This document shows positions 53,921-58,478 of a DNA stretch of 64,000 bases, in pieces. The translations under genes and the position numbers were made by a program. The stretch lies in sequence record OP380601.1; one strand, given 5' to 3'. The notes beneath the pieces were generated by a model. The model searched no databases, was not told the origin of the DNA, and saw only the letters and a program-made list of their open reading frames with translations. Every line of letters begins with the position of its first letter. The first letter of the stretch is position 1.

Positions 53921-56155
53921 ATGAAGATGGTTGAAATGAAGACACCAATTTATGGTGATACTCAAGGCGAAGTGAAACAGTTTGGTATGGTGCAATCTTC
54001 AAAGGCATATACCATACTGTCTTCCGGATTGTATAAGTTCAAGATCCGCGCATTTATTCGAGAGCTGAGTTGTAACGCAATCGACGGTCATATTGCACTT
54101 GCATTGCAGGGCAAACCGGTACACAAACAATTTGATGTAGAGTTGCCTTCAGAATTGAGCCTTCAATGGCGTTTGCGGGATTATGGCATTGGTCTTTCTC
54201 CGGAAGGTATTGATGCTCTGTTTACAACTTATTTTGCATCAACCAAAGAAGAATCAGATGATTTTATCGGTGCTTTTGGTTTGGGTTCAAAAAGTCCATT
54301 CTGTTACACCACAACCTTTACAGTTACATCTTGGTTTGATGGGGTAAAGACGGTTTACAGTATATATATGAATAACGGGATCCCTGCCTGTGTTCCTGTC
54401 CATAGCTGTCCATCAGATGAGCATACAGGTATTGAAATTGTCGTTCCTGTAGATCAGGAAGATATTTCAGATATTCAAGAAGAAAGCCGTTTTGTTTATT
54501 ACACGTTCGATAGAAACGAATATTTCCCTAATTTCGTTGGGACTGACTTGGGTCTATGTACATATAAAGATGAACAAAAGAATATCCCACGTCTGTATGA
54601 CCACGGCACATATGCAATTATGGGGGGTGTATCGTATTCAATCCCCAGAAAGTTTATCGATGGTACAGTTTGTGAGATCTATTTCCCTAAAAACTCAACC
54701 AAGTTCATTGAATTCCCTATGGGTTCTCTTAATCCTCTTCCTAACCGTGAAGAATTGAGTTTGGATGAGCATACAATTACAACCCTTAAGAAGTATTTTA
54801 AATCACACGCTGATAAGGTATGGGACGATGTAACAATCGCAATTGCAGGATGTAAGGATGCTCGGGAGAAGATAAATAAGATCAAAGACCTTACTTTCGG
54901 TACATCGATTTTTAATTTTGTAAGCAATACGATCTATCATAATAAAAAGACTCTGAAAGAATGGGATATTTTTTATGACAATATTGAATTCGATCAATCG
55001 GTTATGAAATATCTAAAATATATTGAAGATAATCTAAAAGATCGTTCTATTGCACATATGAATGGATTTTCTAATACAAGTTATAAGATTTTTGATCGTA
55101 CTCGTTTATCTCGTTATTACTCAAATTATAAGGTGAAATTGGATTCAAAATTTGATCCAAAATACCATACTACCAAGTACAATATTCCATTGTTGATTGT
55201 TGATAACTCAGTAAAGGGATACAAAAAGAACATCCGTTCACTTCAAGAACATGGAATTATCCCTAAGAATAGTCACGGTGTTATGATGTTTAACCAGTCG
55301 GGTATGCGCTGGAATAAAAAACATGATAAAATGATTCGTGATGTTATGATCTCCATTGCAAAGCGTTATCACAAAGACGATGTATGCGTGTATGACGTTG
55401 AGAAGCTTTGGGGTATACATGGACCTGTAATTCAAGAGAAACGTGAACTAGCCCGTAAAGAAGCCCGTAAAAACGCGCCCAGATCCAATAGGGTTCGTGA
55501 TGCTGGACATTCCGTTGTGGTGTTCTACTCTGATAAAACTAATCATGAAAATATCTACGCAAAAGATGTGGATTCGTTTGATGGGTTTTATGTTATAGTC
55601 AAGGGTGGATGTTATTATGACGATGATGATACACAATTCGATCAGATTCTTGAAAACTCAAGCATGTGTAGCATGGCGGATTGGTTAGGAAAACCGGTTT
55701 ATCGTATTCCTTCAGCACTCAAAAAACGTGCAGAAAAGAATCCAAACCTTTCCCGTTTGGTTTATAATGACATTAAAGAAACTACGTATAAAAATTCGTT
55801 TCATAAATTGACTTCAGATACAGTTGGTTTTAATGTACATCGCCGATTGGTTGATAATATTTTGTTGTCGGACCCAATTAGAAAGCGTTATGATTTAGTT
55901 TCTAAAAAGTCTTGGGATGAAGATACATATCGAGAGTATATGAACTTGCTTTCTGTTACTTCTTACAACGAAAACGAGGAACTGAAGAAGTATATTTCAT
56001 CTTTTGAAGATGCTGCCGTTGAGAAATACAAAACCAATCTTGAAATATTCAAGAAAGATCATCTGGTTGTGTATACACTTCTTCATTCTGTAAAAGATAT
56101 TTCTATTTCTGATGAAGTTTGGAAATCTATTAATAAAATGGTTACTGGGGCTTAA
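53921..56155 (+). CDS. rIIA: rIIA protein
   Basis: LSSGLYKFKIRAFIRELSCNAID, DYGIGL, YFASTK, GAFGLGSKSPF (GHKL-like). Confidence 0.95.
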   Translation: MKMVEMKTPIYGDTQGEVKQFGMVQSSKAYTILSSGLYKFKIRAFIRELSCNAIDGHIALALQGKPVHKQFDVELPSELSLQWRLRDYGIGLSPEGIDALFTTYFASTKEESDDFIGAFGLGSKSPFCYTTTFTVTSWFDGVKTVYSIYMNNGIPACVPVHSCPSDEHTGIEIVVPVDQEDISDIQEESRFVYYTFDRNEYFPNFVGTDLGLCTYKDEQKNIPRLYDHGTYAIMGGVSYSIPRKFIDGTVCEIYFPKNSTKFIEFPMGSLNPLPNREELSLDEHTITTLKKYFKSHADKVWDDVTIAIAGCKDAREKINKIKDLTFGTSIFNFVSNTIYHNKKTLKEWDIFYDNIEFDQSVMKYLKYIEDNLKDRSIAHMNGFSNTSYKIFDRTRLSRYYSNYKVKLDSKFDPKYHTTKYNIPLLIVDNSVKGYKKNIRSLQEHGIIPKNSHGVMMFNQSGMRWNKKHDKMIRDVMISIAKRYHKDDVCVYDVEKLWGIHGPVIQEKRELARKEARKNAPRSNRVRDAGHSVVVFYSDKTNHENIYAKDVDSFDGFYVIVKGGCYYDDDDTQFDQILENSSMCSMADWLGKPVYRIPSALKKRAEKNPNLSRLVYNDIKETTYKNSFHKLTSDTVGFNVHRRLVDNILLSDPIRKRYDLVSKKSWDEDTYREYMNLLSVTSYNENEELKKYISSFEDAAVEKYKTNLEIFKKDHLVVYTLLHSVKDISISDEVWKSINKMVTGA

Positions 56156-56179
56156 TGCCCCTTTAAATGAGGATATAAA

Positions 56180-57415
56180 ATGAAAACTAATTATGAAAAG
56201 ATATTTGATCTTATATATGATGGTATATATGACGTAACAGGAATTAAAGTTTCATCCCGAGATATGTCAAAATCTCTGGGTAGCATTGGATTGGATGGAT
56301 TGGATGTAGTTGAATTAATCATGTATATTGAAGAAAGTCTTGATATAGACTTTCAATATATAGATTATTTTGATGATTATGACGCGATTTCAAATCTTAA
56401 TATTCAGCAACTCGCCAATCTGGTGGTTAAATATTATGATACACAACCCGTAGAACATGTTGATATTAAATTTGTTGTTGAAACGGAAAGTCGTGAAGAT
56501 AAGGTTATTCGGCTACATAAAACCGGTCTTAGTCAAAATGAAATCTCTAGACAAATTGCGGTCCCCCGATCTACTGTTGGTGATATTGTTCGGCGTTATA
56601 AAGGGATTCAGAAGCCTAAGAAAGTACACGTTAAAACTGTTGATGTGGTAGAAGAAAAGAAATCCGAGGTTTCTTGGAATGCAGGATTCAATTTCATTAA
56701 CTGTTATATTGATGGCGAAGTTATTACGGCAGATCGTAAACATCCAGCATTTGATGAAGCATTTAAAATTTTGATAGAAACGAATGATGTTATTCGTGCT
56801 GCTAGTATGTTGTCTATCAAAAAGGCAATTGAAACTTATGTAAAAGGTGATATCAAAATCGTTGGTAATACCCTGACATATAAAGATGTTGTTCTAGATA
56901 CTAACATGACTCGGCGTGTAGTTGAGATGTGGAAAACCGGTGAAGATATCGATGCTATGATCAACTTCCTTACCCGTCTGGTTAAGAACCCGCGCCGTGA
57001 GGCAGTATATGAGCTGTTTGATTTCCTGAAACACAACGATATTAAGATCACCGAAGATGGATTCTTCCTAGCGTATAAGCGCATTCGTGACGATTATACT
57101 GATATCTGGACTGGTACTTTCGATAACTCGATTGGTGCGAGCCCTCGTATGGAACCTTTCGAAGTAGATGCAGATCGAAAGAATGAGTGTTCCTGTGGTT
57201 TGCACGTTGCATCGGCTGGATACATTCCATATTATTCCCGTAGAGAAAATGACCGTGTTATCATGGTAAAGGTTGACCCTGCTAATGTTGTTGCTATCCC
57301 AGAGGGATATGACCATGCAAAACTCAGGACTTGGACTTATGATGTAATTAAGGAAGTTACATATGAATTCAAAAATGGATCTTTCAAAAATCAGTCTATT
57401 GGATTCACGTATTAA
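56180..57415 (+). CDS. rIIB: rIIB protein with N-terminal ACP-like domain and HTH
   Basis: WNAG, DRKHPAF, NPR..AV.EL.DFL, DGFFLAYKR, CSCGLHV, VKVDPANVVAIP. Confidence 0.93.
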   Translation: MKTNYEKIFDLIYDGIYDVTGIKVSSRDMSKSLGSIGLDGLDVVELIMYIEESLDIDFQYIDYFDDYDAISNLNIQQLANLVVKYYDTQPVEHVDIKFVVETESREDKVIRLHKTGLSQNEISRQIAVPRSTVGDIVRRYKGIQKPKKVHVKTVDVVEEKKSEVSWNAGFNFINCYIDGEVITADRKHPAFDEAFKILIETNDVIRAASMLSIKKAIETYVKGDIKIVGNTLTYKDVVLDTNMTRRVVEMWKTGEDIDAMINFLTRLVKNPRREAVYELFDFLKHNDIKITEDGFFLAYKRIRDDYTDIWTGTFDNSIGASPRMEPFEVDADRKNECSCGLHVASAGYIPYYSRRENDRVIMVKVDPANVVAIPEGYDHAKLRTWTYDVIKEVTYEFKNGSFKNQSIGFTY

Positions 57416-57417
57416 TT

Positions 57418-57439
57418 AAAGGGGATTAATTTCCCCTTT
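57418..57439 (+). terminator. Terminator after rIIB
   Basis: AAAGGGGA-TTAATT-TCCCCTTT-ATTTT. Confidence 0.75.
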
Positions 57440-57459
57440 ATTTTATGAGAAAAATACTT

Positions 57460-57521: not shown

Positions 57522-58478
57522 ATGTCCGTTAGCAACTATGAAAAAGTCATCTCATCTATTGTTGAGATGAAAGAAAGCAAAGGTATGGGTTCCCGTGCAA
57601 TTGCTAAAGCACTCGGTATTTCTAAATCTTCAGTTAACTACTATTACGAACGTTATATGGAAGAAAATAACATAGTAGATGATATGAAGACCGGTCCCCG
57701 AGTCCTTGTTCTTGATATTGAAACCGCTCCTGTACTTGCTCACGTATGGCGATTGTTCAAGACTAACGTTGGATTGAACATGATCGACCAAGATTGGTAT
57801 ATGCTAAGTTTTGCAGCAAAATGGTTTGATAGTGATGAAATCATTTATATGGACCAACGAAACGCTAAAAACGTAGAAGATGATTCCGATATGCTCAAAG
57901 TTCTGTGGGAACTTTTGGACGAAGCAGATATTGTTCTTCACCAAAATGGTAAGCGTTTTGATATTCCAAAGATCCGCGCTCGTATGATCTTCCATAATAT
58001 GAAACCATTCTCTGGTGTAAAACATATTGATACTCTTGAGATCGCAAAGCGTACTTTCGGATTTACTTCCAATAAACTGGAATATATGACTGATACGCTG
58101 TGTAGTGACACCAAGAAATCTAAACATGCTAAATTCCCCGGTTTCGAACTGTGGAAAGAATGTCTGGCTGGCAATATGGAAGCTTGGCAAGAAATGGAAG
58201 ATTACAATATTGGTGATATCGTTTCTCTTCAAGAACTGTATGTCAAACTATCCCCATGGTCGGATCGTCTTCCAAACTTCTCCCTGTATACTGATTCTGA
58301 CGAATTCACATGTGTATGTGGTGGTCATGAGTTTGAGGATGCTGGTTTTGCTTATACCGAAGTAAGCAAATTCAAACAATATAAGTGTGTCAAGTGTGGT
58401 AAACATTGGCGCGGTCGCAAGAACCAAATTACGAAAATTAAGTCAAAACTTTTGTTGACTAATGCTCGCGAATCATAA
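57522..58478 (+). CDS. HTH + RNase H-fold (DEDD/YprB-like) exonuclease + zinc ribbon
   Basis: SRAIAKALGISKSSV, VLDIET, NGKRFD, IDTL, YNIGD, CVCG...CVKC. Confidence 0.85.
   Translation: MSVSNYEKVISSIVEMKESKGMGSRAIAKALGISKSSVNYYYERYMEENNIVDDMKTGPRVLVLDIETAPVLAHVWRLFKTNVGLNMIDQDWYMLSFAAKWFDSDEIIYMDQRNAKNVEDDSDMLKVLWELLDEADIVLHQNGKRFDIPKIRARMIFHNMKPFSGVKHIDTLEIAKRTFGFTSNKLEYMTDTLCSDTKKSKHAKFPGFELWKECLAGNMEAWQEMEDYNIGDIVSLQELYVKLSPWSDRLPNFSLYTDSDEFTCVCGGHEFEDAGFAYTEVSKFKQYKCVKCGKHWRGRKNQITKIKSKLLLTNARES

Follow-up and report, generated by a model that had tools for sequence, protein, structure and literature searches.

Why should a phage carry, at the N-terminus of its RIIB protein, an acyl carrier protein (ACP) domain that lacks the attachment serine? 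The question is raised by the rIIB gene of Aeromonas phage avDM6 (OP380601.1; Straboviridae, Emmerichvirinae, Ishigurovirus), which is located on the + strand at positions 56180..57415, stop codon included, of the window, i.e., the whole stretch of 64,000 nucleotides from this sequence record that was analysed. The gene encodes 411 residues arranged as an ACP-like domain, a linker, a helix-turn-helix (HTH) domain, a second linker and the RIIB core. We hold, with moderate confidence, that a non-carrier ACP fold has been reused as an acidic docking module on RIIB and has been conserved across Emmerichvirinae. An earlier note on this DNA knew of no described fusion of rIIB and ACP. Literature searches for rIIB together with ACP, or for phage ACP mimics, likewise found nothing relevant, and sequences with the fusion have been public since the genome of phage 65.

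An added domain on a T4-like RIIB

The gene product is assigned to RIIB by its match to phrog_609 (E 1e-99) and by a precomputed match to PF26926 (Phage_T4_rIIB). Residues 102-398 align end to end with residues 8-312 of T4 RIIB (34% identity, E 3e-60), a protein of 312 residues with its HTH at residues 7-50, and residues 1-101 of the avDM6 protein are therefore a pure addition. The RIIB proteins of T4 and T6 (312 residues) share with that of avDM6 the HTH, the RIIB core and a gene that adjoins rIIA, whereas they are without the ACP-like domain. A scan of the rIIB open reading frame (ORF; 56180..57415, +) for stops found none internal. The uninterrupted ORF, the T4 alignment and the family matches all agree with the earlier description of about 88 N-terminal residues that share one reading frame with an HTH and the core of RIIB, 411 residues in total.

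All parts of the protein are encoded on the + strand. The ACP-fold domain occupies residues 1-89 (56180..56446) and has four helices (residues 5-20, 40-54, 62-71, and 75-88) and a net charge of -11. It is followed by linker 1 (residues 90-101, 56447..56482), which is predicted to be disordered with a predicted local distance difference test score (pLDDT) < 50, and by the HTH domain (residues 105-144, 56492..56611), which is homologous to the N-terminal HTH of T4 RIIB by the match to PF25787 (HTH_SB, E 3.9e-11) as well as by the T4 alignment. The segment around the HTH, residues 102-149, has a net charge of +7. The RIIB core, defined by the phrog_609 and Pfam (PF26926 Phage_T4_rIIB) matches, spans residues 164-405 (56669..57394); it has no relative in the PDB by sequence, and by fold convincing matches of the protein arise only through the ACP domain. 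The full-length AlphaFold2 (AF2) model has a mean pLDDT of 85.7 and a predicted template modelling score (pTM) of 0.52, with low-confidence stretches at residues 90-101 and 150-159. The high pLDDT, the pTM of only 0.52 and the disordered linkers together argue for three well-folded modules without a predicted fixed packing. The layout shown by the model is thus one of beads on a string, with three modules predicted to sit on flexible linkers.

Residues 1-89 have an ACP fold

Residues 1-89 form a genuine ACP fold, of fatty-acid-synthesis (FAS)-type acyl carrier descent. Taken alone, the avDM6 sequence reaches 17.7 bits (E 0.004) with PF00550, below the Pfam cut-off of 20.8, and about 18-24 bits with the NCBIfam ACP models, far under their cut-offs of 66-106 bits. 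It matches the PHROG ACP family phrog_5934 at E 8e-6, and a PDB sequence search with the single domain gave weak matches, of which all 60 listed were ACPs. The nine RIIB N-domains were combined in a clade profile (alignment A1), which finds E. coli AcpP in the PDB at E 4.7e-9, again with ACPs as 60 of the 60 listed matches. PF00550 is matched by eight of the nine domains (best E 8.8e-8) and the NCBIfam FAS-type ACP models by all nine (best E 3.4e-12). By these profile scores homology to PF00550 and to ACPs holds at the level of the clade, with the avDM6 sequence alone being sub-threshold.

The predicted structure agrees with the profiles. Four helices are seen when residues 1-101 are modelled with AF2 (pLDDT 74), with helix II beginning at residue 40, and a Foldseek search of the PDB with the modelled domain returned nearly exclusively acyl or peptidyl carrier proteins at target-normalised template modelling (TM) scores of 0.6-0.78, with a Foldseek probability of ~1.0 but E-values of only 0.01-0.2. 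Several of the top structural matches are ACPs that serve as subunits of membrane machines, namely MmpL5-AcpM, EmbC-AcpM, complex I, and Ycf2-FtsHi, while the search of BFVD returned phage 'carrier domain' proteins. The ACP fold claimed in the earlier note is thus recovered by profile and by structure search of the N-terminus.

The closest point of comparison is E. coli AcpP (PF00550, TIGR00517), with which the RIIB domain shares the four-helix fold, the acidic helix II motif D-x-L-D-x-V-E-L-x-M-x-x-E-E, and a similar size and isoelectric point (4.05 for the RIIB domain). Helix II spans residues 40-54 (56297..56341, +), and the peptide IGLDGLDVVELIMYIEESLDIDF represents residues 36-58 of avDM6 RIIB. 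The acidic recognition residues of AcpP (D35, D38, E41, E47, and E48) are present as D39, D42, E45, E51, and E52, so that helix II and the acidic character are kept as the earlier note had stated. Five residues, L41, D42, E45, L46, and E51 (L37, D38, E41, L42, and E47 in AcpP), are invariant across the nine RIIB N-domains; three of the acidic recognition residues, D42, E45, and E51, are thereby clade-invariant. On the other hand the RIIB domain differs from AcpP in having Gly40 in place of the serine, and hence no phosphopantetheine or carrier function, in scoring ~24 bits against an equivalog cut-off of 70, and in being fused to a phage protein where AcpP is free-standing.

The attachment serine is replaced in avDM6 RIIB

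Gly40 (codon GGA, 56297..56299, +) stands at the position of Ser36 in E. coli AcpP, at the N-terminus of helix II, as judged from the sequence, the profile alignment and the AF2 model; this is the replacement of the phosphopantetheine serine that had been read at this codon before. The serine of the conserved D-S-L motif of ACPs is thus absent from avDM6 RIIB. A survey of rIIB N-termini for DGL and DSL, an extension proposed in the earlier note, found G, D or E in the isolates and DSL in one relative. At the serine column, the three Ishigurovirus sequences of the phage 65 group (avDM6, phage 65 and one metagenomic sibling) have G. The five genomes of Ceceduovirus examined (CC2, P19, AP1, Aszh-1, and AS-szw) have D (GAT), and ZPAH1 has E, as do the metagenomic P0008, P0010, and P0011. 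The Aswh_1 domain is 98% identical to that of ZPAH1 (by tblastn only, the residue having been read for ZPAH1). The one sequence with Ser (AGT, in a canonical DSLD) is that of the metagenomic P0006, whose phage contig is fully syntenic. The codons at this column are joined by single-base steps.

With Gly in avDM6, and Asp or Glu in the sister lineages, in place of the phosphopantetheine-bearing serine, the RIIB domain is no longer a carrier. It could be argued that the domain is still a working carrier, modified at another residue or in some lineages only and carrying an acyl or other group, and the canonical DSLD of P0006 would be in line with this. However, phosphopantetheinyl transferases act at one position only, which is occupied by Gly in avDM6 and by G, D or E in all sequenced isolates examined. 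Nor did these genomes show a second copy of the domain in a tblastn search, which gave a single place in each record. We therefore regard a working carrier as exceedingly improbable.

The fusion is shared across Emmerichvirinae

The fusion is not peculiar to avDM6. The ACP-like domain is present in all Emmerichvirinae RIIBs examined (nine Aeromonas phages) and in metagenomic relatives too. The same continuous ORF is found in phage 65, CC2, P19, AP1, Aszh-1, ZPAH1, and metagenomic contigs, and the fusion is therefore not a sequencing artefact; a stop or frameshift separating the domain from rIIB, which would have undone the earlier reading, is found in none of these genomes. The RIIB core was found in 2,653 phage records, and at least 80% of the avDM6 protein was covered in only 21 of them. 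With the N-terminal piece alone, tblastn returned 19 records, all from Aeromonas phages, and the genomes examined from this set belong to two Emmerichvirinae genera. Searches of IMG/VR with single domains returned phage 65 only, a homologue search limited to residues 1-95 returned the phage 65 group only, and in a library of 1.84 billion representatives the carriers of the RIIB-type domain make up two 50%-identity clusters.

The domain does not always precede the HTH. In two metagenomic RIIBs, P0010 (L014:5001-6140, in a syntenic 223-kb phage contig) and P0011, the order is HTH-ACP-core rather than ACP-HTH-core, and by domain assignment the modules of these proteins are shuffled. Two module orders relative to the HTH are as expected for an autonomous module. 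The metagenomic P0009 (551 residues) has a different N-terminus of ~250 residues, in which a degenerate ACP was sought with Pfam, a hidden Markov model of the domain and hhalign without a match, and it seems that the RIIB N-terminus accepts different accessory modules. P0004 (305 residues) was considered as a natural RIIB without the domain and was rejected, as the contig ends within the gene and truncates its call, and in-frame sequence upstream of the call still encodes the C-terminal half of an ACP-like domain.

Constraint on the domain

In a tree built from RIIB cores, the four lineages with the domain branch as a polytomy within a clade with support 98/97, which also includes P0009, and the serine-bearing P0006 is sister to the Asp lineage (support 97/100). 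The RIIB N-domains outside the phage 65 group are only 22-42% identical. The ratio of nonsynonymous to synonymous substitution rates (dN/dS) of the domain is 0.12-0.14 in Ceceduovirus pairs and 0.29 in the comparison with L007, and these values show a domain under purifying selection. Among the three sequences of the phage 65 group substitutions avoid residues 36-52.

It is conceivable that the domain is a decaying remnant, i.e., that an accidental fusion of an ACP gene to rIIB was followed by loss of the serine, and that the domain persists without function. A serine column that drifts freely among G, D, E, and S would be in agreement with decay, as would the raised dN/dS of the domain in the avDM6/phage 65 pair (see below) and the different N-terminus of P0009 within the same clade. 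Against this, the domain has been kept in four lineages as diverged as stated above, with five invariant residues and dN/dS of 0.12-0.29, its predicted fold is confident, and no frameshift, stop or truncation of the domain occurs in any complete genome examined. A remnant without function is thus very improbable.

The linker evolves differently from the modules on either side of it. Between avDM6 and phage 65 the stretch of residues 87-103 (56438-56488) is hypervariable, with 41% identity and a dN/dS of 0.93, and the flanking modules are 85-97% identical.

A probable docking module on RIIB

The RIIB domain would, in the reading that we favour, be a folded and strongly acidic protein-protein docking module, held on a disordered linker of ~12 residues ahead of a T4-like HTH and core. 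The contact surface would be the helix II face (D39, D42, E45, E51, and E52), which would bind a basic surface of the partner, and docking would serve, in Aeromonas hosts, to recruit the anti-exclusion machinery of RIIA/RIIB or to regulate it. Candidate partners are a host ACP client, RIIA, or the basic HTH of RIIB itself. We infer both the docking role and the use of helix II as the working surface. A precedent is provided by the mitochondrial ACP (mACP) of Plasmodium, in which the serine is replaced by Phe and whose sole role is to bind as a subunit in the Isd11-Nfs1 complex (PMC8547962). Like the RIIB domain, P. falciparum mACP is an ACP fold without the serine, kept as a pure protein-binding subunit with its acidic helix II contacts retained (PMC8547962); unlike the RIIB domain it is eukaryotic, organellar, and free-standing, has a known LYR-motif partner and has a hydrophobic residue at the serine position. 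The RIIB domain resembles this case in being a serine-less ACP fold retained under selection, as seen from its low dN/dS and its invariant helix II residues. The study of mACP found nearly no serine-less ACPs outside Apicomplexa (PMC8547962), whereas the present searches returned many.

Several observations weigh against a docking role. The conservation of helix II may be partly structural; L41 and L46 (L37 and L42 in AcpP) are probably core residues of the fold. The helix II motif is also kept in serine-less ACP-like lipoproteins that are predicted to be exported (see below), and the relative P0006 retains DSL, so that its domain might still be modified. In the avDM6/phage 65 pair the dN/dS of the domain is 0.65 compared to 0.07 for the core (Fisher p 2.5e-4), with 16 nonsynonymous and 6 synonymous changes in the domain and 8 and 29, respectively, in the core; this could reflect relaxed constraint rather than an arms race. 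Finally, T4 RIIB works without the domain, which is therefore accessory and not central to RII function. RIIB of T4 and T6 is needed against RexAB, triggers a bacterial gasdermin/CARD system and is toxic when overexpressed, by a mechanism that is stated to be unknown, and genetic phenotypes (Rex exclusion, lysis timing) are known only for the T-even coliphages.

The charge of the domain may also be viewed in the context of other RIIB proteins. Among 89 RIIB homologues, acidic windows (50 residues, net charge <= -10) were found outside the core in 50 and within the core, which is the sole control of this analysis, in 12; 40 homologues carry the window C-terminally of the core. The ten closest complete relatives have no C-terminal tail, and their window lies on the N-terminal side; it falls in the ACP-like domain in nine of them and in the differing N-terminus of P0009 in the tenth. 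An acidic appendage may be of general use to RIIB, and the ACP fold one means of providing it, which would weaken the case for mimicry of host ACP discussed below.

Such an appendage could also act within the RII system itself. The acidic domain (net -11) could bind the basic HTH (net +7) or RIIA, either as an autoinhibitory DNA mimic or as an interface for RIIA-RIIB assembly, a task that would fall to disordered acidic tails in other lineages of RIIB. The complementary charges of the adjoining modules, their flexible linkers and the commonness of acidic windows outside the core would all be in favour of an internal regulator. However, the AF2 model does not place the domain confidently against either the HTH or the core (as reflected in the pTM), the HTH is found on either side of the domain, and the core is the only control for the acidic windows. 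Moreover, a generic acidic tail would require neither an ACP fold nor invariant residues in helix II. A purely internal role is accordingly rated as quite unlikely.

Serine-less ACP folds elsewhere

Serine-less ACP folds were also found outside RIIB. Among the best 150 library matches to the domain profile, 57 of 168 domains are without the serine (E in 37, D in 13, and G in 4, one of the last being avDM6); this ranking is biased towards serine-less matches because the profile favours residues other than Ser at the serine column. The matches include proteins of ~115-150 residues in which a signal peptide and a lipobox cysteine precede a DELD ACP-like domain; one such protein, annotated 'acyl carrier protein', comes from a Gemmataceae (Planctomycetota) genome. 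More widely, a family of ~115-220 residues was seen in which a lipobox (P0098, P0099, P0101, P0118, and P0130) or transmembrane segments (P0123) are followed by a serine-less ACP-like domain QGADELDIVEIVMAVEE. An ACP fold that is predicted to be exported was unexpected.

Phages, too, encode such proteins in stand-alone form. P0211 (L006:6001-6300) is a serine-less ACP-like protein of 99 residues with a helix II, LDELDVVELIMYIE, that is near-identical to that of the RIIB domain. It is encoded on an 81.7-kb JGI contig with dense small ORFs, nearly all on one strand, and a phage RNase H nearby, and this contig is probably from a large phage. The 'acyl carrier protein' of Ackermannviridae (Salmonella phage Det7 gp45 type, L008:160-483) has full-length homologues in 271 phage records. 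All six sequences read (L008, L012, L020, L021, L022, and L023, from Kuttervirus, Taipeivirus, and Aglimvirinae) are without the serine, with GDELD, GDDLD or CDDLD in its place, and going by these residues the Ackermannviridae proteins examined cannot be the carriers that their annotation implies. Like the RIIB domain they are phage-encoded ACP-like proteins with D or E for the serine and the same helix II motif; they differ in being free-standing, ~103-113 residues long, from another phage family, and encoded beside a gene for a von Willebrand factor A (vWA) domain protein rather than beside rIIB. In the two phages with flanks examined the gene follows one of ~740 residues, which carries the vWA-domain annotation in Dickeya phage phiDP10.3. 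By comparison, the serine is present, as DSLD or DSFD, in all three other annotated phage ACPs looked at (P-HM2, Vibrio phage 501E54-1, and ctuI7215).

The stand-alone proteins, P0211 as well as those of Ackermannviridae, suggest that the module can act in trans, and they bear on the possibility that the RIIB domain is a decoy of host ACP. A permanently apo domain would use helix II to occupy host proteins that bind AcpP, with AcpS, PlsB, the Lpx and Fab enzymes, SpoT, MukB, and IscS as candidates. As a consequence RIIA/RIIB would be tethered to the lipid-synthesis machinery of the inner membrane, or an ACP-dependent host or defence activity would be blocked. Apo-ACP, when overproduced, is toxic to E. 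coli cells and inhibits their glycerol-3-phosphate acyltransferase, which would be compatible with such an effect. The positions aligned to D35, L37, D38, E41, M44, E47, and E48 of AcpP are all kept, the best matches of the profile among solved structures are gammaproteobacterial AcpPs, the NCBIfam matches are to FAS-type models, and the near-identical helix II of P0211 and the serine-less stand-alone 'ACPs' of Ackermannviridae point in the same direction. On the other hand identity to AcpP is only ~25%, in solved complexes the phosphopantetheine arm, missing here, also takes part in many of the contacts between ACPs and their partners, and the unstructured acidic tails on many RIIB homologues argue for a generic acidic role. 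The helix II motif is furthermore found in the predicted exported lipoproteins, which cannot meet FAS enzymes, and for this reason helix II conservation alone is not evidence that the domain mimics AcpP towards the partners of AcpP. We consider a host-ACP decoy unlikely, and a docking module in the wider sense remains the preferred reading.

The rII locus

The rIIB gene of avDM6 is 92% identical to that of Aeromonas phage 65. Upstream in the same transcription unit lies its partner rIIA (53921..56155, +; 744 residues), assigned by a match to phrog_612 ('RIIA lysis inhibitor', E 3.6e-161) and with a weak match to HATPase_c at its N-terminus. In the public record OP380601.1 both rIIA and rIIB are labelled 'hypothetical protein' in spite of these strong family matches. 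A Shine-Dalgarno sequence GAGGA (56169..56173, +), as read from the sequence, is located six bases 5' of the rIIB ATG. A small GC-rich inverted repeat, GGGGC TTAAT GCCCC (56147-56161), lies across the rIIA stop just 5' of the rIIB ribosome binding site; it was not called in a terminator scan and could serve in coupling or attenuation of rIIA/rIIB expression. An internal promoter that would give a shorter RIIB without the domain was not found, the number of promoter-like sites (15 compared to 17.6 expected) being at chance level.

Directly 3' of the rIIB stop there is a terminator-like hairpin (57417..57440, +) with a 9-bp stem followed by a T run, and a promoter-like site for the next gene lies 3' of it. 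The next gene (57522..58478, +) encodes 318 residues with an N-terminal HTH and an RNase_H_2-type exonuclease domain (phrog_403, 'DNA polymerase exonuclease subunit', E 1e-113; PF13482, E 1e-13). The HTH of this protein resembles the RIIB HTH class, and CxxC pairs are found towards its C-terminus. The order rIIA, rIIB, and exonuclease gene is kept in avDM6, ZPAH1, CC2, L007, and L014, and a gene for the topoisomerase large subunit lies upstream of rIIA in avDM6, L007, and L014.

Implications

ACP folds without the carrier serine are thus seen to be far more common than the literature suggests, occurring in the RIIB of Emmerichvirinae, the 'ACPs' of Ackermannviridae, and lipoproteins of Planctomycetota. 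As they are widespread, many database entries named 'acyl carrier protein' cannot be carriers. It is tempting to speculate that serine-less ACP folds are a recurrent phage tool for plugging into the ACP interaction network of the host, an idea that we rate as doubtful and rather improbable. If it were true, RIIA/RIIB would act at an ACP-client machine at the inner membrane, e.g., in phospholipid or lipid A synthesis, and this would give a first molecular handle on how the rII proteins protect infected cells. T4 RIIB is without the domain, so that lessons from Aeromonas phages may not transfer directly to the classical system. RIIB is among the oldest genes of molecular genetics, and an accessory domain with a well-understood fold, whose relatives bind through a defined surface, would provide a concrete bait for the contacts of the RII complex, at least in Aeromonas phages.

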